Assembly (NCBI GenBank): GCA_048013815.1
Contig: CM106586.1
Coordinates: forward strand, 1,364,001-1,428,000
Direction of reading: 5' to 3'
Origin: Setoptus koraiensis
Lineage: Eukaryota > Animalia > Arthropoda
Length of the DNA stretch: 64,000 bases
Positions 15,773-54,590 of the stretch are shown here, one piece after another (the stretch's first letter is position 1; every line of letters begins with the position of its first letter). The position numbers and the translations under genes are program-made. The notes under the pieces were generated by a model. The model did not search any database. It saw nothing but the letters and a program-made list of their open reading frames with translations, and was not told where the DNA came from.

Positions 15773-16187
15773 AATTGTTCCGTTTTGGAAAATCATCACT
15801 GGAGATTTGCCATGAGTATTTTCAAAGATTCTCATATATTTGATCATTTCTCTAAGGCTACCTGGTCGGATATTGAATCACAATTGAAGTGTCTTATTTT
15901 AGCCACCGACATTGCTCATCAAAACGATTATCTAATAAAATTCAGACAATTGATGGTTGATCCGCAGTTCTCAATGATTCAATTCGAACATAGAAGTTTA
16001 GTATTGCAGATAGCTCTCAAATGCGCCGATTTAGGCAATCCATGCCGTCCTTGGATATTGAGCAAATATTGGAGCGAGCAAATATGTACAGAATTTTATC
16101 GTCAGGGCGATTACGAACAGCAACTTGCCATCAAATTGACGCCCATGTGTCAGCGCCATAAATCCACCATTGCGGGAATACAATCAG
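15773..16187 (+). CDS. PDE7: PDE7-like phosphodiesterase, catalytic exon after the 12.4-kb intron
   Basis: NCSVLENHHWR...LILATDIAHQN...ALKCADLGNPCRPW.LSK.WSE...EFYRQGD.E...IAGIQ continues the domain exactly where exon 3094-3326 stops. Phase-0 acceptor TATCAG|, donor G|GTAATA. Confidence 0.93.
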
Positions 16188-16310
16188 GTAATATAAACTA
16201 ATATATATACACTGGTATCATGTGTGGATATCATCGTGACCACTTTTTCATCATAACAAAAATACCATGTTCGATTTATTGATTTTTGTATTGTTCTTCT
16301 CTTACGTCAG

Positions 16311-17289
16311 ACTTTTTCTGTCACATCGTTCAGCCCCTGCTAGAGTTGTGGCACAAGTTTCTGCAGTCGCCCCTATCGAGCTTATTGATGTCTAATTTCA
16401 ATTACAATTACCAACAATGGCAGCAGGCTTCACTGGCGGCCAAGGTGTCAAAACGCCGCCACTCATTCAACACCAGCAACAAAATGAACCCTCAGCAGCC
16501 ATCAGCAATCGCCGATGGTCAGAAACAAACACGCGGCACAAATTGTGGAAAACTAGAGAGAATAGTGAGCCAGGATAAAGGTAGCACTAGGACAGAGAAC
16601 GACAACAATGATCCACAACAATTGACCAGTTCTAATGATATCAGCCAGAGTAGGGATATTGTTGTTGGTCAAGAGCATCATGCTAGCATATGTAACAACG
16701 AAAAAATCTCCGATGTATATTTAAAACGATCTTTGGCAACATCTCGAGCCGGAGACTCATCATTGCTACATTGTAAGACGCTCAGATTTAGTAGATCGTT
16801 AAATAGCTTGAATTCTAATCAAATTATCAACATCGATGATCTCAGTGCATCGCTATTCCTGGCTCATATAGCATCGCCAGAGCAGCAACAACACAACTAT
16901 TCACACAATAAAAACTACCACCCGACGAGGGCTTCTTTATATTCTAGCGCCAAATATCCGAATAAAACAAAAAGAGGACACATGTTTCACCAGATGAGCT
17001 TAACCGGTTCTACCACTGCAACCAAAAATTCGGAACCTAGTCAATCATTTTCCATTGAACAAATTGAGTCAAAGTTAGAGACGAGCACCACCGCAAAAAA
17101 TGCAAACAGTGACATGGTAACTGCTGGCCACCACGCACATGAGAAGAAATCATTTTGTTCAGGTGAGGGCCAGTGTGGAACGCCATCACCGCCTGCATCA
17201 CCATCATTTATTGTTGCGTCGTCATCCGCAAAGGATCTGTCAGCAGCTAAACTAACAGTGAGGCCATCAACAGGATGCTCGTCAGTTAG
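16311..17289 (+). CDS. PDE7: PDE7-like phosphodiesterase, end of catalytic domain plus low-complexity tail
   Basis: Acceptor CGTCAG| gives DFFCHIVQPLLELWHKF (compare PDE7 GFMTYLVEPLFTEWARF). Donor AG|GTGAGT at 17290. Confidence 0.85.
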
Positions 17290-17400
17290 GTGAGTAATTT
17301 GCGTATTGGGTTTGTTTGACTACATCTCTTTGTGTCTAAGACGAATGTTTAACCTCTCATATACATTTCTGTAATAACCTGTTGAAACAACCTGAAGCAG

Positions 17401-18342
17401 TATGACATTGACAACGCAAACAACAACAACAAACAGCACACCATCAAAACATAGGAAAAAAACCAAACCCAAGTCAAAACCATCAACACAACAACAACAA
17501 ACAACCAACACTGCCATAGTGAATACTAGATCGTCCGATCATTTGATTAGGAAGACGCTCTCACCGATAAACGATGATATTGATGACAGGCCATCACCGT
17601 TGGGTATACGTTCCTCATCGCCTCCATCTAGGTCGTCGATGCTCTCTGATTGTTCAACCTCATCATCATCATCATCATCACCATCATTATTATTTGTCTC
17701 TTCGTCTATATCAGAGAATACAAAATGCAAAACTAAATCAAAATCTTCAGATCGTTACTCCAATTACCCAGAGAAGCCCTTTCGCCTTTTGGCACAATAT
17801 TATGACTCTTCACTCCAAACCACAACAACTCCTCAGCTACTCGGTCATAAAAGACAAGGTGCCAGTAAAATAAAAGTCCCTATATCCAATATAACTGCTA
17901 CGCCTGCGGCGTCGGCTATCGTAAATACCAATGATAAGACGCACGTGTGTAAAAAGTCGCCCCCATCACCGTTCTGCTCTGTAAGTAGTTCAACTAATCG
18001 GGCGCCACAAAGAATTTCAACGTTTATCTTATGCATAGCTCATTTAACTCACACAATTTCTATCCGAATCCATCGATATCGTTACAGCCTAAAAATTATC
18101 TAGCACATAGTCGCCGGAGAGAGTCTGATCCTGGTTGTTGTGGCTTCGTTGGCGCACCGGAAACCGGAAATCAAATGAGAACGGCAAACACTGCCGATTT
18201 CGAATTGGCCGCCGCCGCAGCCATAGTGTCCTTATTACAATACCAAAACAGTGCACGATACCAGAGGCGTCGTTCATCACTTCCTGTTTGTCTACCCAAA
18301 AGACGCTCATCTTATCCTGTTGAGTCGAAGAGGCGTGTTTAA
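17401..18342 (+). CDS. PDE7: PDE7-like phosphodiesterase, probable last two exons (17401-17980 and 18088-18342), Ser/Thr-rich tail
   Basis: Phase-consistent chain: AG|T ATG at 17401, donor GTAAGT at 17981, acceptor TTACAG| at 18087, stop at 18342. No homology evidence; supported only by splice signals and frame. Confidence 0.55.
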
Positions 18343-38256: not shown

Positions 38257-39495
38257 ATGCTTCATTTGTTGGAGCTTATACTTCCTTACCGTTTCGCCAT
38301 CATTGCTAGCTTAGTATTTTTGTTATGTTCACTCATGTTACATAACGCGCGCGCGCAAACACACGCACACATTTCGGCGTTAGCTAACTGATCTGACCTT
38401 AAGATGCTGAAACTATGCATATACTTATATACTAACAAAATTAAGTTAGAAAAATTAATTAGAGCTGTTCGAATCCTCTCAATCGCCCTTAGCGACAAGT
38501 GTTTGTGAGCTCTATCTGGGACGTCACATGAACGTTTCGGTCTTATCTGAAAACGAGGACAAGCATTTGCAAAAACCTGCAAATCATGCCAAACCGGGCG
38601 TTATATGTTGTGAATGCTCTGCTTATTTTGGCTATGCCTCTTGCCAACACTTCTATGGAACTTCCGAGACAAAGCGGGTTCGACCGTTTTAACGAGAGGG
38701 AGGAAACCCTATTGGACACTTAGATGTTTAGGAGGGCAACATCGCTTACGTTAAGAACATTCTCCACGCATGACTTTGAGAGCTTTCTGCGACCCAAAAT
38801 CTGTGTTACATTAAGGATGTGTAGCAGCTAGAGGGTATTTTTGGAAAAATTTTTATCTGAGGTTGGGATTTTCTTTTTTGGGTAGAATATCAATAGTCGA
38901 TCATCTGGCATTGTGAGCGGATCTTCTGGTCACACCCATTTCTGACGAGATCTGGTATTTTTGTCATCTGCACTGGTTTTTTTAACTTTTCGGTCCGAAC
39001 CTGCGGTTGCACGATAAATTGCGTCGGCACACGGCTAGGTCTTGTCAAGATACGTGTGTTGACGAAGGAAAAATGGCAAAAAAGTATGGACATGGCCCCT
39101 CTGACCGCAACCGCACTCTCTAAATATGCCTAAAAACGCACAAAATTCGAATGCGATTTTTGTTCATTTTTGCTTACAGGAGATTAAATTTTGAACCTAG
39201 CGAATTTGATTCAAAACAAAAAGGTTGCAAGAAAGTCGCCACACTGATTGCAAAAAATGACGAGAGATCAATGTTGTCTGAGTTATCTGCAGGCCCACAC
39301 GGATTGGTCCAACTTTGAAACACAAGCTGTAGAAATGGCCTAGCTAGAGAAAAGGTTGTCAAGTTTTGTGACTATCAAGATAAAGTTCGAGCTATGACGA
39401 TTTTTTAATATGAGAAACCTTCTAAACCGGAAGTGGAGCTGTACAATGATCCATCTTTTGCTAGAGCACAATCAGCTAAGGTATCGAAAGATTGA
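38257..39495 (+). pseudogene. Decayed paralog (psi-A) of the orphan six-Cys membrane protein family, tail-to-tail with NLK copy 1
   Basis: Its 3' end translates YEKPSKPEVELYNDPSFARAQSAKVSKD*, homologous at DNA and protein level to the tails of the 48889 and 51509 ORFs. 38310-38450 resembles the shared leader block (cttagta.ttttgttatgt...gcgcgcgcg...gatgc..aaact). In-frame stops; no transmembrane segment found. Confidence 0.6.
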
Positions 39496-39506
39496 CCGAA
39501 TCGTTT

Positions 39507-41009
39507 AGTATAACAATATAATGTATTGAAAGCATGTGAGAAAACGAATGGATCGGCCAAAGGAACCGAGCGGTCGTGAAAAATTTGTGACCGACAAAGC
39601 AAAACTACACGCCAGTTATAGTAACAACTATAAATTTCAATTTTAAGATACTCAATAAAAAGTCTCATGAATAATAATAGTATCAAATGTGATACACATT
39701 GAAAAAGAAATAATCTCATGTTTTAATCTTTGGTCAAATTAGATTGTTCTATCCTTCCCATTGATGTGGGCTAGGTGGTAGTTCGGACGGATGTGCAACA
39801 GTTGAAGATGTGAAGGATTTGAAAGCGGCTGAGTGAGGGTTTATGCACAAAGGGGTCCTAGCGGAACTAGCGCACCTTTCCAAAATAGTCTTGTGTAACA
39901 ACTCTGTGATATTTCAAATATACATTCAAGGATAAATGATGAAATTGTTAGTACTGCGTGCGAGAAATGATGAGATATTTCAGTGATAATTGAGTGAACA
40001 AAACTAACCTTTAACTTGTGTGACATAAACTAAGTCACGTTCAAAGCCATCGTCAAATGGGATAGGAGCTGTGGGTTCTAGATCACAACAAAACTTTCTT
40101 GCTCCTTGTATAGAGTGACAACATTTGCACATACAAGAATGATATCGTATTCTGCCCTCTTCCAAATATGGGTGATTTAAGGCAGTAGCACCATCAATTC
40201 TTTTATCAGGATTAAATACCAACATCTGACATAACAAGTGGACAGCTTCATGTGTTGCTTGCGAGGATAAAATGTACAGGGCAGTAAGTGCTGGTTGTTT
40301 GAAGGGACTCCTTCTTATGTGATTCTTTGCTCCTTGACAAGCGTATTTCATGTCCTCATTTGAAGGGGTACCTAATAAATCAACAATTAAATCTAGTTGC
40401 TGGACAGGTGTCTGAGCCTGAAATAATATTCTTCTACCAAGAAGCTCAGCAAAAATACATCCGACAGACCAAATATCTATAGCTGACGAATAATGTTTAG
40501 CTCCCATAAGTAGTTCAGGCGCTCGATAATATTGTGTCACTACCTCCAAGGTCATGTGCTTATACCGATCTGGTTCCACTCTGGCTAATCCAAAATCACA
40601 AATCTTTAACAAACAATTACTATTTACTAATAGGTTACCAGGTTTGATATCACGATGTAATATTTTTGCCGAGTGCAAATACTTCAAACCTCTCAAAGTT
40701 TGATAAAGAAATATTTTGACGTGATCAGATGTCAGGGGTTGGGATGATACAATAATCTTGTGTAGATCGGATTGCATAAGCTCGGTTATCACATATAATT
40801 CCTGAAAATAATCTAAATGAGGTGGTTGTAATATATCTAATGCTGACATGACATTTTCATGTTTAAGGAAGCATAGCATTTTGATCTCACGCAACACACG
40901 TTTACTTGAGACAAAATTTTGGAAGACATTGGGCATCTTTTTGAGAGCCACTTTTTTTCCGTCCCTTGGGTCCGTCACCGACCAAACGATACCAAACGCT
41001 CCATATCCG
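39507..41009. repeat. Segmental duplication unit 1a (NLK kinase domain, last intron, last exon and 3' flank), matching 49626..51128
   Basis: Colinear at a constant offset of 10119 bp. From 39521 on I see only about four substitutions (39537, 39561, 39612, 39845) before the 5' junction. Confidence 0.95.
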
Positions 41010-41095
41010 ATGGGTCTGTCCGGCTGGAATTCGGAATTAACACCGTTAACAGAGGAAGAAGATGAAGACGATGACCAAGCAACAGAACACATCAC
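39749..41095 (-). CDS. NLK: Nemo-like kinase, copy 1 (exons about 41122/41092-40009 and 39903-39749)
   Basis: PDRPIGYGAFG, VALKKMPNVFQN, HRDIKPGNLLVNSNC, DFG, EVVTQYYRAPE. A 105-bp intron adds ELLHK...PLCINPHSAAFKSFTSSTVAHPSELPPSPHQWEG*, the typical NLK/nemo C-terminus. An upstream exon is possible (acceptor at 41123). Confidence 0.95.
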
Positions 41096-42780
41096 AAAGT
41101 TAATGTTGTAGTTGTTTTTTTCCTATAGTACGACAAATATATATCATCAAATTAATTTGGCAGTCGAAGGTTATAATAATGTGAAATAGTAATAATATCC
41201 TGCCTTTGTTCTATCGTAAAGCTCAAATAGCTGTAATAGCAGTAATAATAATAATAATAATAACAAATCTATTTCGTTTTTGGCGTCATCCAAGGGGCAT
41301 CAAGTAATATATCGGACAACTTGGTGGTGTTGGTTGTAGGCTCTCAGAACTGGGGAGATTTTGAATTCCATTACAGTTGCTCATCGCTCGTCACATTTAC
41401 ATACATACATACATATGTGAGTATGTATATGTATGTATATGTGTGTGCATATATATTTTTTATAGATCTTTTATATAGATAAATATAAATATATAAATGT
41501 TATAATAATAGTAATAATATTGATAAATTTTTCTTCTCTTTTCAGTATCTATGAGCGTGTGTACGTGTGTATTTATTCGTGTTTAATTATTTATTTGTCT
41601 GCTTGTGAGTATGTTATGCTTGTGTGTCTCTACTCGTTATATGACGCCAGATTTGAGGATTGTTGTTGTTGTGGGATTAGTTTCTTCAGCAGAATTTGTC
41701 TTAAATGAGTTCTGTGTACACGCCGATGGCTGGATTTTATAATTAGTGGACGGACAGAAGGATGGTTATAAATTGAGGGCACACGCACATAAGACACATA
41801 CAGACAATTAGCCTACGGGACCAAGATTTTATTTTATAACACAATTCTTTTCCTCCTAATTATTACTAGTTTTAATGAGTTTAAATTTGGTAACAACAAT
41901 TAAAGTATTGTGTTATATATGTAAATTTGTATGCTGTTAGAGATGAGCTTGTTTGGTTATTATCACACTCAATATAGATGAGAAGTTGCTATTGTTTTGA
42001 TCAATAGTCAAGTTGGTGCCTATATGTGATGTATGATTGTTGGTTGGATTATATTGCGATAGGCAGTTGATGGTGCTGCATTGACTAATGTCGCCTCTTT
42101 CGTGTCTCTTAAGTGTATATAGAAGCTGTTATTTGAATTTCGACTTCTTCTTAGATACTTTTTATCAATGTAAGAATATAGTCGTCTAGTTGAGCAAGTT
42201 AATAATTTAGTTAGTTGATAGATTGTTGCATGAATGATGATAATATTGATTACATGGACGATAATGGATCGATGATGGCGATGCTGGCTGGGATAAAAGA
42301 AACCTCAAGCTCAACGGATAGAGGTGAGTGTAGTTTGCGTTAGTGCAGTTTTATAAATACTACTACTACTAGTGCTGTTGCTGTTGCTGTTGTTGCTGTT
42401 GGTGACGATAGTAGTGATGGCAAAGATGCTGATGACAGTGGTAGTGGTGCAGCAGCAACGACGACGAACTATCGACAATCGAATCATACGACGACGACGG
42501 CGACGACGAGGACGGCGATGATGGGTGAGTAAGTGAGACGAGCGAGCAAATCAACGAACGGCGAATGGACGGGCCATCGAACGACGACGACGGCGACGAG
42601 CATTAACAATAATAGTATTAATTTTGCAGAAACAGCTCAAGCGGCGGCGGCAGCAGCAGCAACAACGACAACGACAGCGCCAGCAGCGGCGATGTTGTGT
42701 CTGCAGAATTTGCCCGTGTGTCTACTTGTGTTCGAGTAAATTCCACTATTCGATCGCTAGTGCGTCAGTTTGTGCGTCAA

Positions 42781-42784
<4 letters not shown>

Positions 42785-42823
<39 letters not shown>
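42785..42823. repeat. (TCTG)n tetranucleotide microsatellite
   Basis: Read directly. Confidence 0.88.
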
Positions 42824-42825
<2 letters not shown>

Positions 42826-43963
42826 TAGTTAGTGGTAAATGCGACTGTAGTGAGTAGTGTGCGCAGAACGCAGCAGGCAATGGATCCAATCGGTGGTAGT
42901 GACGGCAATGCTATAGTACATACTAGAGTTGTGAAACTGCACACAAAGCAGACACACGCACAAACAGACAGTCAATCGCTCAATAGCCTTACTTGTGACA
43001 CACACTCAAACAGACAGAAAAGAAACGGGGAAAAAACCTGTGAGGGGCAAGACGAAATAACCCCGTGGCTTGTTGAGTTGCACTCAAATGCACTGTTAAC
43101 AATTCCATGTCCAGTGTGCTGTGTGAGCTTTTGCCAACGACTCTTGGGTCGCTTTTTATTCTCCGCCAGAGGCGCAGAGAGCGCGCAAGGATGCACAATC
43201 GAGTGCACGGTGTCTCGGTAAATGTTGAAAGCGTTCGACAGTACAGGGCTCAATGCGCCGACCGAAGCCACTCGCGGTGCGCATGAAACCTAAGGTGCGC
43301 CGCCCTGGCGGCTTAAACGAAAAAGAAGCGACCGGTAGAGATTGGGAGCGAGGCAGAGTGTGCATTGTAACTTATTGCGTTTGTTGGGTTGCTGTAGGAC
43401 GCTAGTGCCATTAATGTTGGCCTGCGTCTACCATTAATGCAGCCAGTCTGGCAGTCTCTTTGTGTTGGCCATTCGTTGGACTGTTCGACTCGTTGTGTGT
43501 GTGTGTGTGTGTTCAGTTAGCCTATACTCAGTATAGTGTGTACTGTACTTTTGAACTAATGATTGTTGTTAGTGCTGTTAACCTAGAAACGGAGTAAAGC
43601 GAGTTGAGAGTTCTGTTCAATTGCATGCTGGCAGCAGTGCTAAGAATGCCGCTGCTGGCTCACACAGTGCTAACACTCACACTGAACGGTGCAGTGTGTT
43701 TGCTGGCTATAGACACTAAATGGAGGCCAGAAGTAGGACGAAGGCGACGGTCATAGTGACGACGTAGTAATATAGTAGCGCACTGTTGTATTCAGGCCAG
43801 TGGTGCCTATAGGCTGCCTATTGCAATGGCTATCTGTCGGCTTGCCTGCCAGCCGGTTGGCCTGTGTGCGCTGGCAACTTGCTGCACAATCGGTCGAGTG
43901 TGAGCTGCATCGAACCAGACCCGACCCGGCCCAATCCAACCTGACCTGACTGACCGGACCCGA

Positions 43964-44218
43964 CCAAACCAAACCAAACCAAACCAAACCAAACCAAACC
44001 AAACCAAACCAAACCAAACCAAACCAAACCAAACCAAACCAAACCAAACCAAACCAAACCAAACCAAACCAAACCAAACCAAACCAAACCAAACCAAACC
44101 AAACCAAACCAAACCAAACCAAACCAAACCAAACCAAACCAAACCAAACCAAACCAAACCAAACCAAACCAAACCAAACCAAACCAAACCAAACCAAACC
44201 AAACCAAACCAAACCAAA
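43964..44218. repeat. (CCAAA)51 / (TTTGG)n pentanucleotide array with degenerate pentamer flanks
   Basis: 255-bp perfect run; it explains the WFGLV-repeat ORFs. Confidence 0.97.
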
Positions 44219-44477
44219 ACGAATCGAATGGAAACAAACCAGACCGGGCAAGACAGGAGAGAACCCAAGCGGACCGGACAAGACCGAAGAGCGAGCTGGA
44301 GTGAACTGAATGAGAGCGAACAAAACAGTCTTTTATGTAGAGTGTGTTGTGGTGAAAAGGCTGCTAAGGCTAACACAAGACGACCAATGGTGGAACAAGA
44401 GCGATATAAAGTGGCACTTCTATTGTGGGTCGTCGTGTGTGTGTTGTGTTTGGAAATTCTTTTTATACTCTATATAG

Positions 44478-44480
<3 letters not shown>

Positions 44481-44554
<74 letters not shown>

Positions 44555-44576
44555 GAGAGAGAGAGAGAGAGAGAGA
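44481..44576. repeat. Compound (CA)n(GA)n microsatellite
   Basis: Read directly. Confidence 0.93.
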
Positions 44577-47489
44577 ACAAGCGAGAGGTTTGAGGTTGAG
44601 AGTGGCGCAAGAAAAGGAGGGCAACTTGGCTGGCGTTGCTCTGGCTGTTGCTGTCGCAGTTAAACTAGCACAGTTACAGACAATTCGCTGCGCTCGATTT
44701 GTCTGAAAATCGAACAAACGGTAATAATTCGCTCGCTGTGTTCTTACATTGTGTGTGTAGGCGCCAGTGTAGTATTTGCATGACTACACCGAATATTACA
44801 ATGTGTGTTGCGATATATTACAATATATATCACAATATCGAATACATCGATTCGAAAGAGTTGCGCCAGGCACAACTTGATTGCAAGAAGCGCCAGATAA
44901 TAGACAACAACTGTGTTAGCGAAGGTAACACACATGAGACAATCATTAACTGTGGCAAATAATGAACATATGGCCACATTGATGCTTGTGTGACATATTT
45001 TTTGCAACTTAAAAATAAACACTTGTTACTCTCTCGCTCACGATGCCTGGACAGTGGCGACAACATTTTACACTACATATCATATATTGAAAGTTGGCCA
45101 CATTGTATGTGCCTCGCTAGGCTAGAAATTCGGCATTCGAATCTCGAATCTCGGATTTCGGAGTTGGGATTTCAAATTCGAATTTCGAGTTTCGAAGCTA
45201 GCGAGCACAAATTGTTGCTTTGATGCGACACATTTGTGGCCAATCGCAGCGACCAATTTCTTCTACAGGGCACAGGGCTTAAGTTTCGTTTGATGGGCAA
45301 TCGAGTGGACGAATGGACACAGACGCATACGGACAGGGCAGTAAAATTAGATTAGTCACCACCATTACTGCTGACTATTGTGTGTAGTTTGGAGCCCCGA
45401 CAAGTTGCATCTTGGAAGCGCTAGCGGTGCGGGCAGTGTTCGAAGTTCCAAGCATTCGAACTGGCGCACATTCGTGCGGTGCTTGCAGGATAGAGAGAAC
45501 GCGCGACCTGGAGCCACTCTAATGGCTTTTGCAGTGGTCAATTCTCTTTGCTATCCACTGTCCGTCCACAACTATTCACACGACTATCGCTGGCAAAAGC
45601 TGGCAAAGTTCGCAAATGCTCGAGCCCTGAGACGCACCACAAATTGTTCGCTGGTGTTTGTGTGTAGCTGGCTTGCAGTGGATAGTTGGTTTGGGTTGCT
45701 GGCGTTCACGCTGATGCACCGTGATTGATCAGTTGGCCCAGGGATACAACACAAAGAGCGCACATTCACCAAGTGTGCGAATTGGCCCTTCGAGAAAAAA
45801 GAATTCCAAGCCAAGCAAGATTCTCTTCGAAATTCGAACGCTCCGTGTTCCATTTAAATCATCATGACACCAATGTGCAATGCTATGCGCGTGCAGCAAC
45901 TGGTGCCACCACGAGCTCCAGCACGAAAGAAACACGCCACAGAAGAGAGTTGGGCTTAAAATTAAAGGTCGACGGCAGTCTGAAAGTCTTCATTTGAGCC
46001 ATGTGCTGCGATCGTTGTTCGCGATCGCTTCGAAATGGAATATTCGTTTCCAAAGTCGCCCTATAAAACAGCGCGCTGCTTGTGTTTATGTTGCTGGTGT
46101 CTTTTGTATATTTAGCACATTTCCATTTTCGCATCCTGGCCAGCACAAATATACTTGCACGTTGTTTATATCTATGTGTTGTTGTTGTTGTTTCAACTAA
46201 CTTTGCTACTGCCACGGCTGCTTGTTGATGCTTCGCGTATGATGAATATTCATTCTGCTCTACGACGCTTCTTTCTCTTATTATGCCGAGCTGCTGACCA
46301 TCTCGTATGGCCACAGTGATGCCCAAATGTTGCCTCTGGCATGGTGCTATTACGAGCCAGTGGCCCTGTAATGTCAATTCGAGCAACTGCAAAGTTGATA
46401 CGAGCATAGTTTTGTTGTGCATTTTGGTTAGCTCAAAGGCGACACCATCAATCGGTGGTCAGAAAAACAGTCGCCATTGATTGATTCTTCGGATTCATTC
46501 AAATCCAACCACTCAAGTCTCGAATCACTTGAATGATATGCCAAAATTATGATTGTGATTATTATGAGTGATATAAATACATGGGCGACACTGCTGCACC
46601 ACATTAATGAGTTGCTAATAAAACAATAATAACAAATATCATAATTATTTGTGCCACACACAACAAACTTTGTTCCTGGTCCAGTGTCTCTGACCATCAT
46701 CTCAGAGCATGAAAGCAAAAACATGTCGTCCTATTTGCTCATTCTTCACGTTGTCGTATGTCTCGCCAAGAGATAATTTGAGTTGAAAATCAAATGGAGC
46801 AACCGTGCAAATCACCAATAACCAGCCCCCTCCCTCCCAAGGTAGGATGACAATCGCGTGGACACAGTCAACATCTTTTTTGTTTGTTGTATCTTGCCCG
46901 GCTGACAAGTTTACATTGGTGAGCTCACAAGAAACTCTCAATCATAATTTGTATGACTTGATTTCGCACAGCTGACCTAGGATTATTAGCAGTGAATCAA
47001 TTAGAGTAATGCACCAGATCTTTGTCTCTATTTTTAGAGCAATTTGTTGTGAGTTGTTCACCACCACAACTACTTCTAATAATAATCTAGTGCTTGGGCG
47101 TTGTTGTTATTGTTGCTGTTGCCGTCGCTGCTGCCGCTGTGAAGCATGTTTGTGGCGACATACCAGGAAATAATAATAGTAATAATAATAAAAAACTCTC
47201 CTGTGAAATAAGCGATTTCTACAAGCGTATTGTGTCTGAATAAATGAGTGTGTGATCTAGCCGAGAGTTGAGAGACGAGCGACGAGATAACGGAGTCTTC
47301 TTCTCGAGGCCCAACCAGTTTTTTTCTTTCCCTCTTCTCAGACTAATGACGGATGCAGCCTGTCTACCGAGTAACTGTATAGGACTTTCATCATTCAACT
47401 CAACTTTAGAGCTTTATCTAAACGAGAAATAATTCCCATCCTCTCATGCCCATTTAGCCAGCCAGATATATTATGCGATATGGCTGGCT

Positions 47490-47490
<1 letters not shown>

Positions 47491-47564
<74 letters not shown>

Positions 47565-47566
47565 GA
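47491..47566. repeat. Compound (GA)n/(GACA)n microsatellite
   Basis: Read directly. Confidence 0.88.
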
Positions 47567-47990
47567 GGGAAGGCAAAAGAAGGGGCAATCAAGTCCGAGC
47601 TAACCACCATAGTATTCTGTAACTCTTTTCCATAGCCGCTTGAACACATAGACACATCTCACAACATTTATACAATAATCTTCGTGCCTGAAACGGCATA
47701 CAAGACAAGCCGGCCTGACAAGTCTCTAATGATGATACTGCCAATCTTCTAGCGAGATCAATGAGCGAGCCAACGAATCAGTGGGTAAGATTGGCAACGA
47801 TTGTTTGTTGTTGTTTCCCCGCAACAATCTTCTATCAAGTTGGCTCTGAATCAACTGTTGCCGCTGCTGTTGCCGTTGTTGTTGTTGCAGCTGTAGCAAC
47901 AACAACAGGTGAATATTTGTTGGCCATTCTTTCCTCTTTTTCTCTCTTATCTTCGTGAACAACTAACGGTCGACTAACATGGAGACACAC

Positions 47991-47993
<3 letters not shown>

Positions 47994-48036
<43 letters not shown>
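47994..48036. repeat. (CA)n microsatellite
   Basis: Read directly. Confidence 0.9.
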
Positions 48037-48038
<2 letters not shown>

Positions 48039-48109
48039 AAGCAATAATATTCGGCCGACCAGCGGTTCTGGCAAAAAAGCGATCGTGTCCCAGTTTAGTT
48101 TGAGACTCT

Positions 48110-48526
48110 CCACCTCTGGCCTACCAACAAACTTACAATACTTGATAGGAGAACTGGCTCAAAGGCATTCTCACTGTCAGGCAATACAACAACTTCTCGG
48201 TTAGACCAGACTGATTCGTAATTTTGGTCGGCTTACCTGGCGCTGCACAGCTCACATAACAGCAATAACAAGTGCCAATTACTCTTTCTTTCTCGTAAGT
48301 TTTCCTCGTCATCGCAAGCGGCCCTAGAAACAACATCAACATCATGCAAACTCGCTTCACTTGATATGTGAAGCGAGCCCTAGTGAATGAAAAAATCACG
48401 ATAGGTTAGTACCCCGATTGTTCCCTTCCAGATTGCTTTAATATCCGGCAGTGGTACTGGAGCAGTAGTGCCAGCGTCATCGCTCATGGTCTTCAATAAC
48501 TAATTGACACTCTCTGGTCTAATTCT
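48110..48526 (-). pseudogene. Inverted, truncated paralog (psi-B) of the orphan membrane protein family
   Basis: The reverse complement of 48385-48526 aligns with 51470-51612 and reads MSDDAGTTAPVPLPDIKAIWKGTIGVLTYRDFFIH* (48487-48380), versus MSDDAATTAPVSLPDFDEICKGEWGLLTYRDFFIHS. Weaker frameshifted similarity continues towards 48110. Confidence 0.8.
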
Positions 48527-48535
48527 ACCATCGCG

Positions 48536-48828
48536 ATTGCTCAGCGCGCGTTCGAAACCATATCACTTGATGGCATTGCGTTGGAGTAGCTGAATTTCCT
48601 GTTATGTAAGGTCGCTTTTCGTCTGATTCTTGTGCATGTCTCGCGCTTTTTTGAATAACATGAGCCCCAATCTCTTAGTAGTTTTGTTATGTAAGCATTG
48701 TCCACTAGCCTAGCATGAGCGCGCGCGGGCACCTGATACGCTGATGCCAAACTTCAACTACATATCAGTACAGTTTGTCAGTTTTCATCTCTATCCCGAT
48801 TCTGAAGTTAGGTGACAAAAGTCGCATT
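48536..48828. repeat. Shared 293-bp leader block, copy 1 (matches 51163..51455)
   Basis: Offset 2627 bp; one mismatch seen (48619 T versus 51246 C). Confidence 0.95.
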
Positions 48829-49614
48829 TAACATTTCGAAATACCAAGATAAGATCAACCTAAAGATTCTTAAATCATAACTAGAACGATGGGCGACGAT
48901 GATCCAAGCACTGAGACACCCGTGTATGACATAATAAAAGATGTATTTTGTAAAGGAAATATTGGCAACTTAAACTACAAGGATTTTCTCATTTATGCTA
49001 ATTGTACATCAAAAGGGGAAGAGGCTGAATTCTACACATGGTGCGCTACATTAACACAAAGAAAAATTTCCGAAGAAGACAAATCGTCCGAGTGTTTCTA
49101 CGATCGCTTTCCCGGACACAACATTGCTGGAGATTATCTGCCTGACATATTCAAATTTCTTTGGCAGAAAAGCGAAAAGATGAGATATAAGGTCAAGAAA
49201 ATTGATGATATAGAACAAAACAATTGCACGGAATTAGAATTCAATGTTACAATTCAAGATGCGACAGACGTGGAAGAGTACTGCGAAAAACGAAGGGACA
49301 ACACTGATTGGAGTAAGTGGTCAACAACAGCCGCGACAATGGCACAGCCGGAGGGATTGTCACTATCGTCACTAGTTTTTCCGATCATTATGATATTTGT
49401 TGCTCTTTTTATTGTGGCATTCTTCGCAACAATTATCTTCTACTATATGAATTCCACTAATCGAAAATCAGGGGCTTCATCTAGGGTTTCCAATATTGCA
49501 GTCCAAACAGTGAGATCGGGAGTGAGGCCGTACAGAAATCCATCAATCGCTAGATCACAATCAGCAAGGTCACCATCAGCAAGGTCACCATCAGCTGGGG
49601 CTTCAATGGTTTAA
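48660..49614 (+). CDS. Orphan single-pass membrane protein TM1: six-Cys ectodomain, transmembrane helix, SARSP-repeat tail, C-terminal ASMV. Main ORF 48889..49614; predicted leader exons 48660-48690 and 48769-48811
   Basis: 241-aa ORF with hydrophobic segment LVFPIIMIFVALFIVAFFATIIFYY, N-glycosylation sequons (NCT, NVT) and an intact paralog at 51509. Leader exons inferred from GTAAGC/CAG and GTGACA/TAG splice sites. Confidence 0.8.
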
Positions 49615-49625
49615 CTGATTTGTCT

Positions 49626-51128
49626 AGTACAACAACATAATGTATTGAAAGCATGCGAGAAAACGAATGGATCGGCCAAGGGAACCGAGCGGTCGTGAAA
49701 AATTTGTGACCGACAAAGCAAAACTACACGTCAGTTATAGTAACAACTATAAATTTCAATTTTAAGATACTCAATAAAAAGTCTCATGAATAATAATAGT
49801 ATCAAATGTGATACACATTGAAAAAGAAATAATCTCATGTTTTAATCTTTGGTCAAATTAGATTGTTCTATCCTTCCCATTGATGTGGGCTAGGTGGTAG
49901 TTCGGACGGATGTGCAACAGTTGAAGATGTGAAGGATTTGAAAGCGGCTGAGTGAGGGTTTATACACAAAGGGGTCCTAGCGGAACTAGCGCACCTTTCC
50001 AAAATAGTCTTGTGTAACAACTCTGTGATATTTCAAATATACATTCAAGGATAAATGATGAAATTGTTAGTACTGCGTGCGAGAAATGATGAGATATTTC
50101 AGTGATAATTGAGTGAACAAAACTAACCTTTAACTTGTGTGACATAAACTAAGTCACGTTCAAAGCCATCGTCAAATGGGATAGGAGCTGTGGGTTCTAG
50201 ATCACAACAAAACTTTCTTGCTCCTTGTATAGAGTGACAACATTTGCACATACAAGAATGATATCGTATTCTGCCCTCTTCCAAATATGGGTGATTTAAG
50301 GCAGTAGCACCATCAATTCTTTTATCAGGATTAAATACCAACATCTGACATAACAAGTGGACAGCTTCATGTGTTGCTTGCGAGGATAAAATGTACAGGG
50401 CAGTAAGTGCTGGTTGTTTGAAGGGACTCCTTCTTATGTGATTCTTTGCTCCTTGACAAGCGTATTTCATGTCCTCATTTGAAGGGGTACCTAATAAATC
50501 AACAATTAAATCTAGTTGCTGGACAGGTGTCTGAGCCTGAAATAATATTCTTCTACCAAGAAGCTCAGCAAAAATACATCCGACAGACCAAATATCTATA
50601 GCTGACGAATAATGTTTAGCTCCCATAAGTAGTTCAGGCGCTCGATAATATTGTGTCACTACCTCCAAGGTCATGTGCTTATACCGATCTGGTTCCACTC
50701 TGGCTAATCCAAAATCACAAATCTTTAACAAACAATTACTATTTACTAATAGGTTACCAGGTTTGATATCACGATGTAATATTTTTGCCGAGTGCAAATA
50801 CTTCAAACCTCTCAAAGTTTGATAAAGAAATATTTTGACGTGATCAGATGTCAGGGGTTGGGATGATACAATAATCTTGTGTAGATCGGATTGCATAAGC
50901 TCGGTTATCACATATAATTCCTGAAAATAATCTAAATGAGGTGGTTGTAATATATCTAATGCTGACATGACATTTTCATGTTTAAGGAAGCATAGCATTT
51001 TGATCTCACGCAACACACGTTTACTTGAGACAAAATTTTGGAAGACATTGGGCATCTTTTTGAGAGCCACTTTTTTTCCGTCCCTTGGGTCCGTCACCGA
51101 CCAAACGATACCAAACGCTCCATAACCG
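49626..51128. repeat. Segmental duplication unit 1b (copy of 39507..41009)
   Basis: Near-identical colinear copy. The 5' junction falls at the GYG codons of the glycine-rich loop. Confidence 0.95.
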
Positions 51129-51193
51129 TGAATATTCTTACAAACCTGTACAAATCTGACCAATTGCTCAGCGCGCGTTCGAAACCATATCAC
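49868..51193 (-). CDS. NLK: Nemo-like kinase, copy 2: 5'-truncated duplicate with a new in-frame N-terminus (exons 51193-50128 and 50022-49868)
   Basis: Protein identical to copy 1 from GYGAFG to the stop; the one coding substitution seen (TGC/TGT) is synonymous. Upstream reads MIWFRTRAEQLVRFVQVCKNIH from an ATG at 51193. Expression unknown, so it could be a pseudogene. Confidence 0.7.
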
Positions 51194-51455
51194 TTGATGG
51201 CATTGCGTTGGAGTAGCTGAATTTCCTGTTATGTAAGGTCGCTTTCCGTCTGATTCTTGTGCATGTCTCGCGCTTTTTTGAATAACATGAGCCCCAATCT
51301 CTTAGTAGTTTTGTTATGTAAGCATTGTCCACTAGCCTAGCATGAGCGCGCGCGGGCACCTGATACGCTGATGCCAAACTTCAACTACATATCAGTACAG
51401 TTTGTCAGTTTTCATCTCTATCCCGATTCTGAAGTTAGGTGACAAAAGTCGCATT
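51163..51455. repeat. Shared 293-bp leader block, copy 2
   Basis: See 48536..48828. Confidence 0.95.
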
Positions 51456-52312
51456 GAGCATTAAGAAATAGAATTAGCCGAAAGAGTGCCTATTAGTTAT
51501 TGAGGACCATGAGCGATGACGCTGCCACTACTGCTCCAGTATCACTGCCGGATTTTGATGAGATCTGCAAAGGGGAATGGGGGCTACTAACCTATCGTGA
51601 TTTTTTCATTCATAGTGATTGTCAGTCAATCACTGGCGATCGATCGGAGTTTTACAAATGGTGTGCACAACCGGAGCGCAAAAACGCACCTGATTCTTAC
51701 AAAGAAGCTATTTGTTCGTTTGAGAGCTTTCCAGGCCAAGTCATCAAGGGAGAATTTTTCATTTCGCACGACATAAATATAGATGAGCATGAAAATAAGT
51801 TCCTAGGGTACGAGCTCCTGAAAGTCGGGGAACTAGATCATAATTGCCCAGAAAATAGATTCGAAACCACTGAATCAGACTACAAAGATGTCCTCGATTA
51901 CTGCAATGCTACATTGAATAAGGAAGATGTAAGTAAATGGAGGACAACCCTCCCTTCTCCTACGCCTGAGGAAGGGTCATCCTTGGCGATCATCCTGGTA
52001 GTTGTCGCTATTTTGATTATTGTTTTCATCGCTATGTTGATCTATCTCTATATGGGGAATGTGTCGAATAAGCGAAGATCTGGTGCAATATCGGGAACAG
52101 GGAGCCAAATAGTCGCCAGAGATTCACTAAGGGCTCCGCCATCTCTGCCAACAATGTCCAAGGTGGCAGACAAGACCTTGAGATCGGAGGTGAATCATTA
52201 CAAGATTCCATCCCTTATTAGATCATCATCAGCTAGGTCGCCATCAGGTGGGCCACCATCAGCTAGGTCGCCATCCTCTAGATTACCATCAGGCAAGGCT
52301 TCGATGGTTTGA
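51287..52312 (+). CDS. Orphan single-pass membrane protein TM2, paralog of TM1. Main ORF from ATG 51509; predicted leader exons 51287-51317 and 51396-51438
   Basis: Same six Cys positions and motifs as TM1, hydrophobic segment LAIILVVVAILIIVFIAMLIYLY, SARSP repeats and ASMV end. Joining the leader needs a rarer GAG acceptor at 51504. Confidence 0.8.
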
Positions 52313-52481
52313 TTGATATTTTGTTATTACAATTATGTAATTTACAGGGCGAGTGGAGCGGCCGCAGAAATTGAGTGTCAATCAAGAATAAACTGAATTC
52401 GACCGATCACAGAGGAGAAGGACTGTCTATCTTTGTTTATTAATTAGATATCTATAATAATAGTAATAATATAAAAACAAT

Positions 52482-54590
52482 CTACAATCTTGGCTTTAAA
52501 TAAGCTATGATGGGCTTGTTATCTGTGAATTCCCTATACCAATCCGGCCGTTGCATAGCGTTTTTAGCGTTCATTATTGCATCGTAAATATTCTTGTAAA
52601 TCTGACCATCGGATTTGCCCAACGCAGAGTTTAATATAAAATCACTTGGTGCCATAGCGTCTGCCAAAGATACGGCATCATTCTTTATCTCGGAACACAA
52701 TTTTAGAATGGCCGCTCTAATATATTCCGTTGGTTTAGCACCCTCGAAATAACCAGCTTGATACAAGGTGGCCAAATTTTTCTCTAATGACCACAGACCA
52801 TACAACAAGCCCAACCTTTCAAGAACTTGAGCCATCGGTACCTCGAGTTCTTCAATGTTTGTGAAGGTGTGCCATCTTTCTAAAACTAGCTCGTCACAGA
52901 AAGCAAACGACAATGAGCGTGCAAAGTAAACTTGTGAGTTACTTTTGGACATAAATGGATCCTTGTCTAAACTGAGCTGTTCTTTTAGTTTCTGAGCCGA
53001 TTGCTTTAGTAGCCAACAAACCAAAAATTTGTAAGTCTCTATGATAAATGTCATGGACAATACATCTTGTGGCCTCTGAATGTTGGCCTTCGTTTTAAGC
53101 ACTGCCTCACAATTGTCTAGATAATCTAGTGAGCCGAATGGAGAACTAATAGCTTGATTACTTTCCAGTTTTTGATCATACAATCTAATGAGATAATTGC
53201 TCGTTTGTTGTTGCAAAACATTGTTGTCACCCTCATAGGTATTGTTAGCGTCATGATCGGAACGTAGATCGCCCAAGCCGGAAGCCTTCAGGTAACCGTG
53301 TCCACCACAAGCCTCGCGACACTCTTGAATGGCATCGCGAGCTATAAAACCGGCCAACCCTTTTGCAGCACTAGACACAGCATGTATCTCGGCCCCCTGT
53401 TCGCCAATGTCCTCTTGATCGCCGCCAAACATAACAGCCACTTGAAAGTTTATAAAGTCCCTCAAGAAGGTCATGGAGAAATTTTGCCACAAATAACAAG
53501 CAGCCAGATAGGGAAAGAGACGCCATTGTTGCATTTGATACTCGATGATAGGCAATTCCTCGCAATCTTCAGGTCCGAATTGTCGTCGTGCCGCCGAATA
53601 TCTTATCGCAATAGTGACAGCCTTCTCTAGATTGGACACTGACATACCAACTATGCCCACTCTGCCCATAGATAGAGTTCCTAGCATGACACCCATGCGG
53701 CGCTTGGTATTTGAATCGCCTGTGTAATTGCCTTTCTTGTCCATGTCGCCCGACCTATTAAACATGCAATCCTTTGGAATGCGATGATTCTTAAACTGTA
53801 AAAATCCGTTGTCAACTCCATTGAGGCCAATTTTGGGGCCCATGTCACCAACCACGATGCCCGAGTATGGCAACAATGTTTGTGGACATCTAATGGGCAC
53901 TATAAAGGCATTCAGTCCGTTACATTTGCCGTCGGCTGTATACAATTGCGCAAACACAACAGCGTGCGTGGCTGTTTGGCCCATATTGCCCGACCATACT
54001 TTAGTTGCTTCGAATGTTGGAGTGTTTAAAACAAATTCATTCGTTTTAGGATCATAATCGGCCCTAGTGAGCATATTTTTCGTATTGCTTCCGTGTCCCA
54101 TTTCTGTCAGCGCAAAGCACCCCAATGCTTTAAAGTCCATGATCTCGTCTAATATCTTAATGTGACGCGCTGAGCCTTGATTCCTTAAACTGTTTGTTAC
54201 AAATTCATACGATAGAAACAACTTCATCGATAGTGACCAATCGTATTGCCCAATGACATTGTATAATACTTGTGTCAATGTTGGATTTGCATAGAATTGA
54301 TCCTCATCTAACAATTCAAATTCAATCAGACGCTTCATTCTGATCAGACACAAACGACGATGTTCGTCCCGGGACAATTCCTCCGATGGATGTCTGAAAA
54401 ATATAGAGTCACTCTCTAACGTCTTCCATATCTTGTGTTTAAATCTGACAATTTCCTCGCCGTCTCTCAATAATCTCATTTTGCGCCAATCAAAGGTGGC
54501 CCGCCGCCTGTAGATGTCCAATGGTCCTGGTGCGAAATCTGGCATCATCTCCAGCCACTCGGGCGTGATGGTCAGGTCGGTCACTTCCAT
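52482..54590 (-). CDS. ACOX3: Peroxisomal acyl-CoA oxidase 3 (pristanoyl-CoA oxidase-like), 702 aa, intronless
   Basis: [77 protein letters not shown]-terminal PTS1-like PRL. Confidence 0.93.

Follow-up and report, generated by a model that had tools for sequence, protein, structure and literature searches.

Orphan single-pass membrane-protein families that are born and die in tandem arrays, signal-anchor (type III) proteins ending in class I PDZ tails, the kinases of the NLK/Nemo/LIT-1 family (CMGC group) and the ectopic copying of templates during double-strand break repair, by synthesis-dependent strand annealing or template switching followed by end joining, are the described systems closest to a locus of the eriophyoid plant mite Setoptus koraiensis that is analysed here. 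The locus lies in a stretch of 64,000 nt (GenBank assembly GCA_048013815.1, contig CM106586.1, positions 1,364,001 to 1,428,000 of the forward strand), hereafter the window, within which all positions are counted. It comprises two related membrane-protein genes, TM1 and TM2, two relics of the same family (psi-A and psi-B), two upstream blocks (L1 and L2), a complete Nemo-like kinase (NLK) gene, NLK1, and a partial copy of that gene, NLK2. The TM genes are read as a living family, and NLK2 as an accidental recent partial copy left by the repair of one break from two wrong templates; a probability of about 70% is given to this reading.

The locus resembles each of these systems in part. As in orphan birth-and-death arrays, the TM genes are small and intronless and encode a Cys-patterned N-terminal domain and one transmembrane helix, and the locus holds local duplicates and dead fragments, its non-coding blocks being near-identical while the coding DNA next to them has diverged strongly. 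Like signal-anchor proteins with class I PDZ tails, TM1 and TM2 have no cleavable signal peptide, are predicted to have the N-terminus outside and the C-terminus inside, end in S-x-V and carry Ser-Pro units; however, the likeness is one of architecture alone, with no relation in sequence or fold, and the N-terminal domain of TM1 and TM2 is long for signal-anchor export. For its part, NLK1 is a full orthologue within the NLK family, being 74–81% identical to other animal NLKs and having the conserved C-terminal PLCINP..SAAFKSF block, with a short N-terminus (28 aa), as in other eriophyoid-type sequences. Its activation-loop motif is T-L-E, as in the wheat curl mite Aceria tosichella, while that of vertebrate NLK is T-Q-E. 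Finally, as in ectopic copying during break repair, a short filler joins two patches of near-identity, each of them graded at one edge and abrupt at the other, although the mechanism is read here from its end product and no polymorphic 'empty' allele was seen.

Two recent copies between TM1 and TM2

The interval from the TM1 tail to the TM2 5′ region consists of two equally young copies, whose outer edges lie in old TM paralogy and whose inner edges are abrupt (Table 1). The first of them is part of a repeat in which 39467–41009 corresponds to 49586–51128. This repeat is not uniform, its differences being concentrated in 39467–39612; the following 39613–41005 (about 1393 bases) shows one mismatch, at 39845, which is synonymous. 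To the left of NLK2, positions 49517–49612 hold the older TM-tail homology, and this edge is graded, while at the other end the similarity of NLK2 to NLK1 stops abruptly at 41009/51128, inside a coding exon. The second copy is that of the upstream block, with 98.4% identity between L1 and L2 and one mismatch in a core of 293 bases (48536–48828); its left edge is abrupt (48536/51163), and its right edge fades into an older and weak homology of the TM 5′ regions. The mismatch rates of the L core and of NLK2 were indistinguishable (Fisher p 0.32). L2 was probably copied from L1, which is itself likely to be a promoter or intergenic DNA. The L block was also considered as a transposon with terminal inverted repeats, which was rejected because the only pair found, 11 nt long with 82% identity, was no better than chance pairs.

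The origin proposed for these patches is a double-strand break between TM1 and TM2 whose repair would have drawn on two templates, neither of them allelic. At the left, the broken TM1 tail would have annealed to its paralogue in psi-A, and synthesis would have run on for about 1.5 kb into NLK1; at the right, the broken TM2 5′ region would have annealed to that of TM1 and gained about 300 bases from the block upstream of TM1. End joining through the 34 filler bases would then have closed the gap between the two new ends. The repair mechanism itself is deduced from the arrangement of the letters. The locus is also a clear natural case in which a single break seems to have been mended from two wrong templates.

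An earlier reading of this DNA, made from the sequence alone (the sequence-only reading), had reported the order of leader block, TM gene and convergent NLK as occurring twice, once with psi-A and NLK1 and once with TM1 and NLK2. The leader block (48536–48843, equal to 51163–51470) and the NLK block are indeed repeated, and TM2 does stand head-to-head with NLK2; however, the double arrangement reduces to one duplicated piece, made up of a TM tail, its 3′ flank and most of NLK.

NLK1 and its headless copy NLK2

NLK1 is a working NLK orthologue with two exons. Its spliced product of 412 aa can be aligned with mite NLKs over the full length, the initial MCSV.WSS included, its kinase domain is complete (Pfam PF00069 Pkinase, 1.5e−59, profile positions 3–263 of 263), and the motifs GYGAFG, VALKK and HRDIKPGN are all seen. 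The best named match was the NLK of A. tosichella (87% identity, 100% coverage), followed by Logan-assembly proteins of 398–414 aa; among the NLK1 matches listed, the source-named ones were NLK, nemo or mitogen-activated protein kinase, bar a few uninformative labels. The intron of NLK1 splits QVK|ELLHK, a point at which the NLK open reading frame (ORF) is uninterrupted in four related mite loci (L002, L007, L009 and L010), and either this lineage acquired it or the others have lost it.

NLK2 is not a whole gene, as codons 1–28, the start codon and the NLK promoter are all missing. The 22 codons that replace the lost ones contain no ATG, and the first in-frame ATG comes after the Gly-rich loop and the catalytic Lys of VALKK. 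Transcription was followed in one RNA run (X7), and DNA cover in three runs from different samples and studies (X1, X2 and X4), all of them read as assembled contigs; X7 is known to be RNA because its NLK contig skips the 105-nt GT..AG intron. The same contig leaves the NLK2 path at 51128 and passes into NLK1 sequence. Moreover, X7 showed no RNA depth over 51129–51450, and the depth of the bin 51040–51176 was exactly that expected with no cover from 51129 on. NLK2 was consequently rejected as a working gene, having neither a start codon with the N-terminal strand, nor a promoter of its own, nor a transcript in this run. It is most likely a young partial copy without function, and in annotation it should be flagged as a partial duplicate and not as a second kinase.

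Two sites of the repeat vary by run, namely 49964/39845 and 49731/39612: X1 has the NLK1 letter at both of them, and X2 and X4 have it only at 49964. This suggests either shared polymorphism or ongoing exchange between the copies.

Table 1. Positions of the TM-family and NLK features in the window
Feature	Position	Strand	Description
psi-A	39428–39495	+	3′-end relic of a TM-family gene; stop at 39495; SARSP units deleted, ASMV end lost
Donor stretch of the copy	39613–41009		NLK1 3′ untranslated region (UTR), exon 2, intron and most of exon 1; only 39845 and 41006 differ from 49732–51128
NLK1 exon 2	39749–39903	−	C-terminal 51 codons and stop
NLK1 intron	39904–40008 (copy 50023–50127)	−	105 nt, GT..AG; the homologous 50023–50127 is skipped by the X7 RNA contig
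NLK1 exon 1	40009–41092	−	Start codon, N-terminus MCSVAWSSS conserved with Aceria tosichella, whole kinase domain
psi-B	48383–48499	−	Inverted 38-codon fragment of a TM2-like gene start
L1	48536–48843	+	Block upstream of TM1, between the head-to-head psi-B and TM1
TM1	48889–49614	+	Intact ORF of 241 codons; six-Cys N-terminal domain, transmembrane helix near residue 166, SARSP tail, C-terminal ASMV
NLK2	49613–51128	−	Partial NLK1 copy: 3′ UTR, exon 2, intron, exon 1 from codon 29 on
Filler	51129–51162		34 nt joining both recent copies; no counterpart at either template
L2	51163–51470	+	Recent L1 copy ahead of TM2
TM2	51509–52312	+	Intact ORF of 267 codons; architecture as TM1; transcribed

TM1 and TM2, living members of an orphan family

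TM1 and TM2 share 35% identity (BLASTP, E 2e−45), and their six cysteines are aligned (21/39/52/69/113/132 in TM1 vs. 20/38/52/69/113/132 in TM2). Each protein has an N-terminal domain of about 160 aa, a single, strongly hydrophobic helix (around residue 166 of TM1 and residue 160 of TM2) and a tail rich in Ser, Arg and Pro with SARSP units. This agrees with the sequence-only reading, which had described two related ORFs of an unrecognised family with one transmembrane helix each; the motifs it listed (CKG..G.L.Y.DF.I...C, EFY.WCA, FPG..I.G, NC.E..F, DV..YC, D.SKW.TT, the SARSP units and ASMV) are all present. The amino acid identity between the two proteins climbs from the N- to the C-terminus, from 34% in the N-terminal domain to 45% in the helix and 56% in the tail. 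As for the ratio of nonsynonymous to synonymous substitution rates (dN/dS), it was about 0.44 in the tail and about 0.6 in the helix; in the ectodomain, the synonymous sites are saturated (proportion of synonymous differences, pS, 0.78), which makes the ratio unreadable there. Where it is measurable, that is, in tail and helix, the two genes appear from these ratios to be under purifying selection. They are considered real genes because two long ORFs have stayed open despite high divergence and the Cys scaffold has been kept. Both belong, as living members, to a taxon-restricted family of single-pass membrane proteins of an eriophyoid plant mite and are orphan genes, which homology-based pipelines would miss.

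Relatives of the family were searched for in several collections. No matches were obtained in a word-indexed protein search with TM2, in an exhaustive profile search (hidden Markov model, HMM) of 1.84 billion representative proteins with the ectodomain alignment (E 0.001), in a profile search of the PDB or in a scan of JGI metagenome contigs, and Pfam reported no family above its cut-off for TM1 or TM2. The Pfam family PF12216 (m04gp34like) was rejected, with 19.1 and 21.2 bits against a gathering cut-off of 25 and only the membrane-proximal and transmembrane end of the profile matched. Two feature searches of the ESM Atlas returned only generic small membrane proteins (scores ≤0.80 and ≤0.60) and were not used as evidence. 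Furthermore, AlphaFold2 gave no confident fold on the three-row TM alignment (mean predicted local distance difference test score, pLDDT, 35.8), and exact-sequence look-ups of TM2 and of the neighbouring acyl-CoA oxidase (ACOX) found no record. As far as public data go, the family appears to be an orphan one, with no relative found outside the window, which agrees with the sequence-only reading, where it was not recognised either.

No cleavable signal peptide was found in either protein, the first ~58 residues being without a hydrophobic stretch (Kyte–Doolittle hydropathy in 19-residue windows, KD19, ≤0.29 over the first 40 windows). A signal-peptide exon in the upstream block L was also looked for, and no in-frame ATG with a hydrophobic stretch was present ahead of its GTAAG sites; the lone possible short upstream ORF of the block is not hydrophobic. 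The RNA contig of TM2 begins at 51494, with no loose end, joint or spliced upstream exon, and TM2 is thus taken to start at the ATG at 51509 without a signal peptide. The class of type I membrane receptors was accordingly rejected for both proteins, which have no cleavable N-terminal signal peptide and, in the case of TM2, no upstream spliced exon in the RNA contig. As to topology, the helix has acidic residues ahead of it and K/R residues behind it, charges that, under the positive-inside rule, would place the N-terminal domain outside the cell and the tail in the cytoplasm.

Both proteins end in A-S-M-V, which matches the class I PDZ-ligand pattern (S/T-x-hydrophobic), and the tails hold 2–4 S-P sites in addition to an RSxS context. 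The S-M-V end may therefore act as a PDZ ligand, and the tail may function through phosphorylation. The S-P sites suit any proline-directed kinase, and RSxS suits basophilic kinases equally.

Concerning the relics, psi-A had been drawn by the sequence-only reading over 38257–39495 and psi-B over about 48110–48526, and in both cases a shorter part was retained. The psi-A tail is 78% identical to the TM1 tail at the nucleotide level (E 3.7e−7), and positions 39428–39482, together with the 3′ flank, are significantly TM1-like (local score z 17), with the stop at 39495. In contrast, the body (38257–39400) showed no significant similarity to TM1 or TM2 by tblastn, HMM or local alignment with shuffles, its z of 1.9 comparing with 4.2 for control DNA and no HMM match being found; likewise, the leader ahead of psi-A gave a sole match of 19 bases (E 0.05), no better than control DNA. 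psi-B is a real TM relative, although confined to the 38 codons of 48383–48499, where it is 74% (amino acids) and 86% (nucleotides) identical to the TM2 start (HMM E 6.5e−12). Its first Cys is changed to Trp and followed immediately by a stop, and its dN/dS is about 1, which points to a dead fragment that has drifted neutrally. The family is here a small array that gains and loses copies, with psi-B as a dead 5′ fragment and psi-A as a 3′ relic beside the true NLK gene. The earlier description of an actively turning-over locus therefore holds, and the locus is a further case of turnover among the orphan membrane-protein families of eriophyoid mites, whose genomes are tiny.

With regard to expression, TM2 is transcribed in X7, where two contigs (51494–51950 and 51922–52284) match it with no differing letters; TM1 and both upstream blocks had zero RNA depth in that run. 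The ACOX gene (52482–54590, minus strand, intronless, 702 aa) is convergent to TM2, and its RNA contig of 1877 nt extends to 52263, inside the coding end of TM2 (stop at 52312); the 3′ ends of the two transcripts appear to overlap.

Alternative explanations

Several points weigh against the reading of TM genes as a living family and of NLK2 as the product of one misdirected repair. To begin with, the export of a 160-aa N-terminal domain without a signal peptide is unusual, and the topology given above is uncertain on that account. Moreover, the copies of the TM family and their neighbours are known from within the 64,000-nt window only, and a single RNA run was readable, as assembled contigs that drop rare variants, so that weak transcription of TM1 or NLK2 would be compatible with it. 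The X7 NLK contig bears the NLK2-type letter at 49964 yet continues into the NLK1 5′ sequence; this letter could belong to an NLK1 allele of that strain or to a mix of two transcripts. In addition, the filler junction (51129–51162) is supported by depth arithmetic and not by a listed contig.

A further point is that an older duplication may have been homogenised by gene conversion, which is unlikely. Under this explanation, the TM tail with NLK and the leader with TM would have been duplicated in tandem in ancient times and later converted from NLK1 and L1, and NLK2 would be old and possibly maintained. Patches of near-identity lying beside unalignable coding DNA speak for such a history, as does the one edge of each block that grades into older homology. 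However, gene conversion between old copies usually leaves tracts whose ends lie within homology, whereas at 41009/51128 and 48536/51163 the near-identity reaches the edge with no diverged homology beyond it, which makes an old duplication less likely, and the edge of NLK2 lies inside a coding exon.

Little probability is given to the TM family being a young recognition system at the species level, with ectodomains that positive selection diversifies and that vary among strains or are absent from some, and with promoters and tails kept alike by copying between paralogs. The hints for it are the low or missing cover of the TM1 and TM2 bodies in X4 and the variable number of SARSP units in TM1. 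TM1 is covered by DNA contigs of X1, X2 and X4, and in X1 and X2 its tail has an additional 15 nt (one SARSP unit) after 49574 compared to the window, a repeat number that is either polymorphic or collapsed in the assembly. In X4, which has the same organism label as X1 and comes from another study, the TM1 body (48985–49258) has about one quarter of the depth of its flanks, and the TM2 body (51623–52400) is without cover at 95% likeness. These gaps may reflect presence and absence or a strongly diverged allele, as differences between strains, but a hole in contig cover proves nothing. If the family were such a system, the captured NLK fragment might be becoming its co-regulated partner.

It is very unlikely that NLK2 is a newborn kinase gene, with a new N-terminus and with expression that begins at a newly acquired exon upstream or at a non-canonical start. 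Its frame is open from 51193 through the kinase core and the last exon with no disabling change, its protein is identical to that of NLK1 from GYGAFG onward, and the NLK2-type letter at 49964 is found in the X7 RNA contig. Nevertheless, with one mismatch the copy is too young for its intactness to indicate selection, its 22 new codons lack an ATG, and the RNA contig enters NLK1 sequence at 51128, after which the NLK2 path is uncovered.

Even lower is the probability of a functional module, which the sequence-only reading had put forward in the form of a receptor or substrate co-duplicating with its kinase. Here, the TM proteins would be receptors or substrates of NLK, selection would hold the genes together, and NLK2 would be co-expressed with TM2 from L2 as a two-way promoter. 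NLK is proline-directed, as CMGC kinases are, and the 2–4 S-P sites of the tails would suit it; moreover, NLK2 and TM2 diverge from a common interval of 380 nt, and L1 likewise lies between two diverging TM gene starts. However, neither the S-P nor the RSxS sites single out NLK, NLK2 has no start codon, with its first in-frame ATG past the Gly loop and the catalytic Lys, and X7 lacks RNA over the junction although TM2 and NLK1 are expressed in it. Furthermore, ten NLK loci of related eriophyoid-type mites (L001–L010) were inspected, nine of them with DNA that was scanned in every frame with the TM HMM and the tenth by its gene table alone, and no TM-family gene was found beside NLK in any of the ten; the neighbours were a lipase, a filamin-repeat protein, SNAPC3, PNP_UDP, a cathepsin and unnamed ORFs. 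As there was a single copying event here and the adjacency is not conserved in the ten loci, the joint duplication of NLK and TM is considered one accidental event and not a module, and a kinase–substrate gene module was rejected, its adjacency neither recurring independently nor being conserved in relatives. The fallback of the sequence-only reading, in which NLK was carried along by a rearrangement hotspot, agrees with the evidence and is the better account. A false lead is thereby removed, as a linked receptor–kinase module has no supporting evidence.

Lastly, that the stretch at 48.5–51.5 kb is an assembly artefact, either a misjoin or a folded-in haplotype, is scarcely credible. In its favour are the near-identical repeats of 1.4 kb and 0.3 kb, and none of the contigs listed spans the whole stretch. 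Against it, the junctions psi-B/L1, L1/TM1 and L2/TM2 are crossed by DNA contigs of X1, X2 and X4, which come from separate samples and studies, and the junction of the TM1 tail with NLK2 by contigs of X1 and X2, the NLK contig has about twice the single-copy depth of its flanks in X1 and X2, the depth of the bin 51040–51176 in X1, X2 and X4 exceeds the share of the NLK contig and thus shows cover over 51125–51176, at the filler junction, which cannot stem from NLK1, and each copy has flanks wholly unlike those of the other, which is not the pattern of haplotigs.

Genomic surroundings

The genome of the window is intron-poor. Besides the genes described above, the window contains those for an SOS-type guanine nucleotide exchange factor, a DEAD helicase, Tsg, Hrs, a bZIP factor, MTHFD and a serpin, together with the intronless ACOX. 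A small amount of this DNA is present in phyllosphere metagenomes. At 15785–17293, ORFs with a phosphodiesterase-like end (HQNDY..., 15785–16201) are followed by long low-complexity ORFs (16286–17293 and 17402–18103) without a Pfam match; none of the ORFs at 15785–18103 is related to the TM family. Positions 43873–44317 hold about 45 units of a tandem array whose period is 10 nt and whose minus strand gives long ORFs made of GLVWF-type repeats, and microsatellites of the types (GT)n, (CA)n and (GA)n are located at 44.4–44.6 kb, 47.5 kb and 55.2–55.4 kb.

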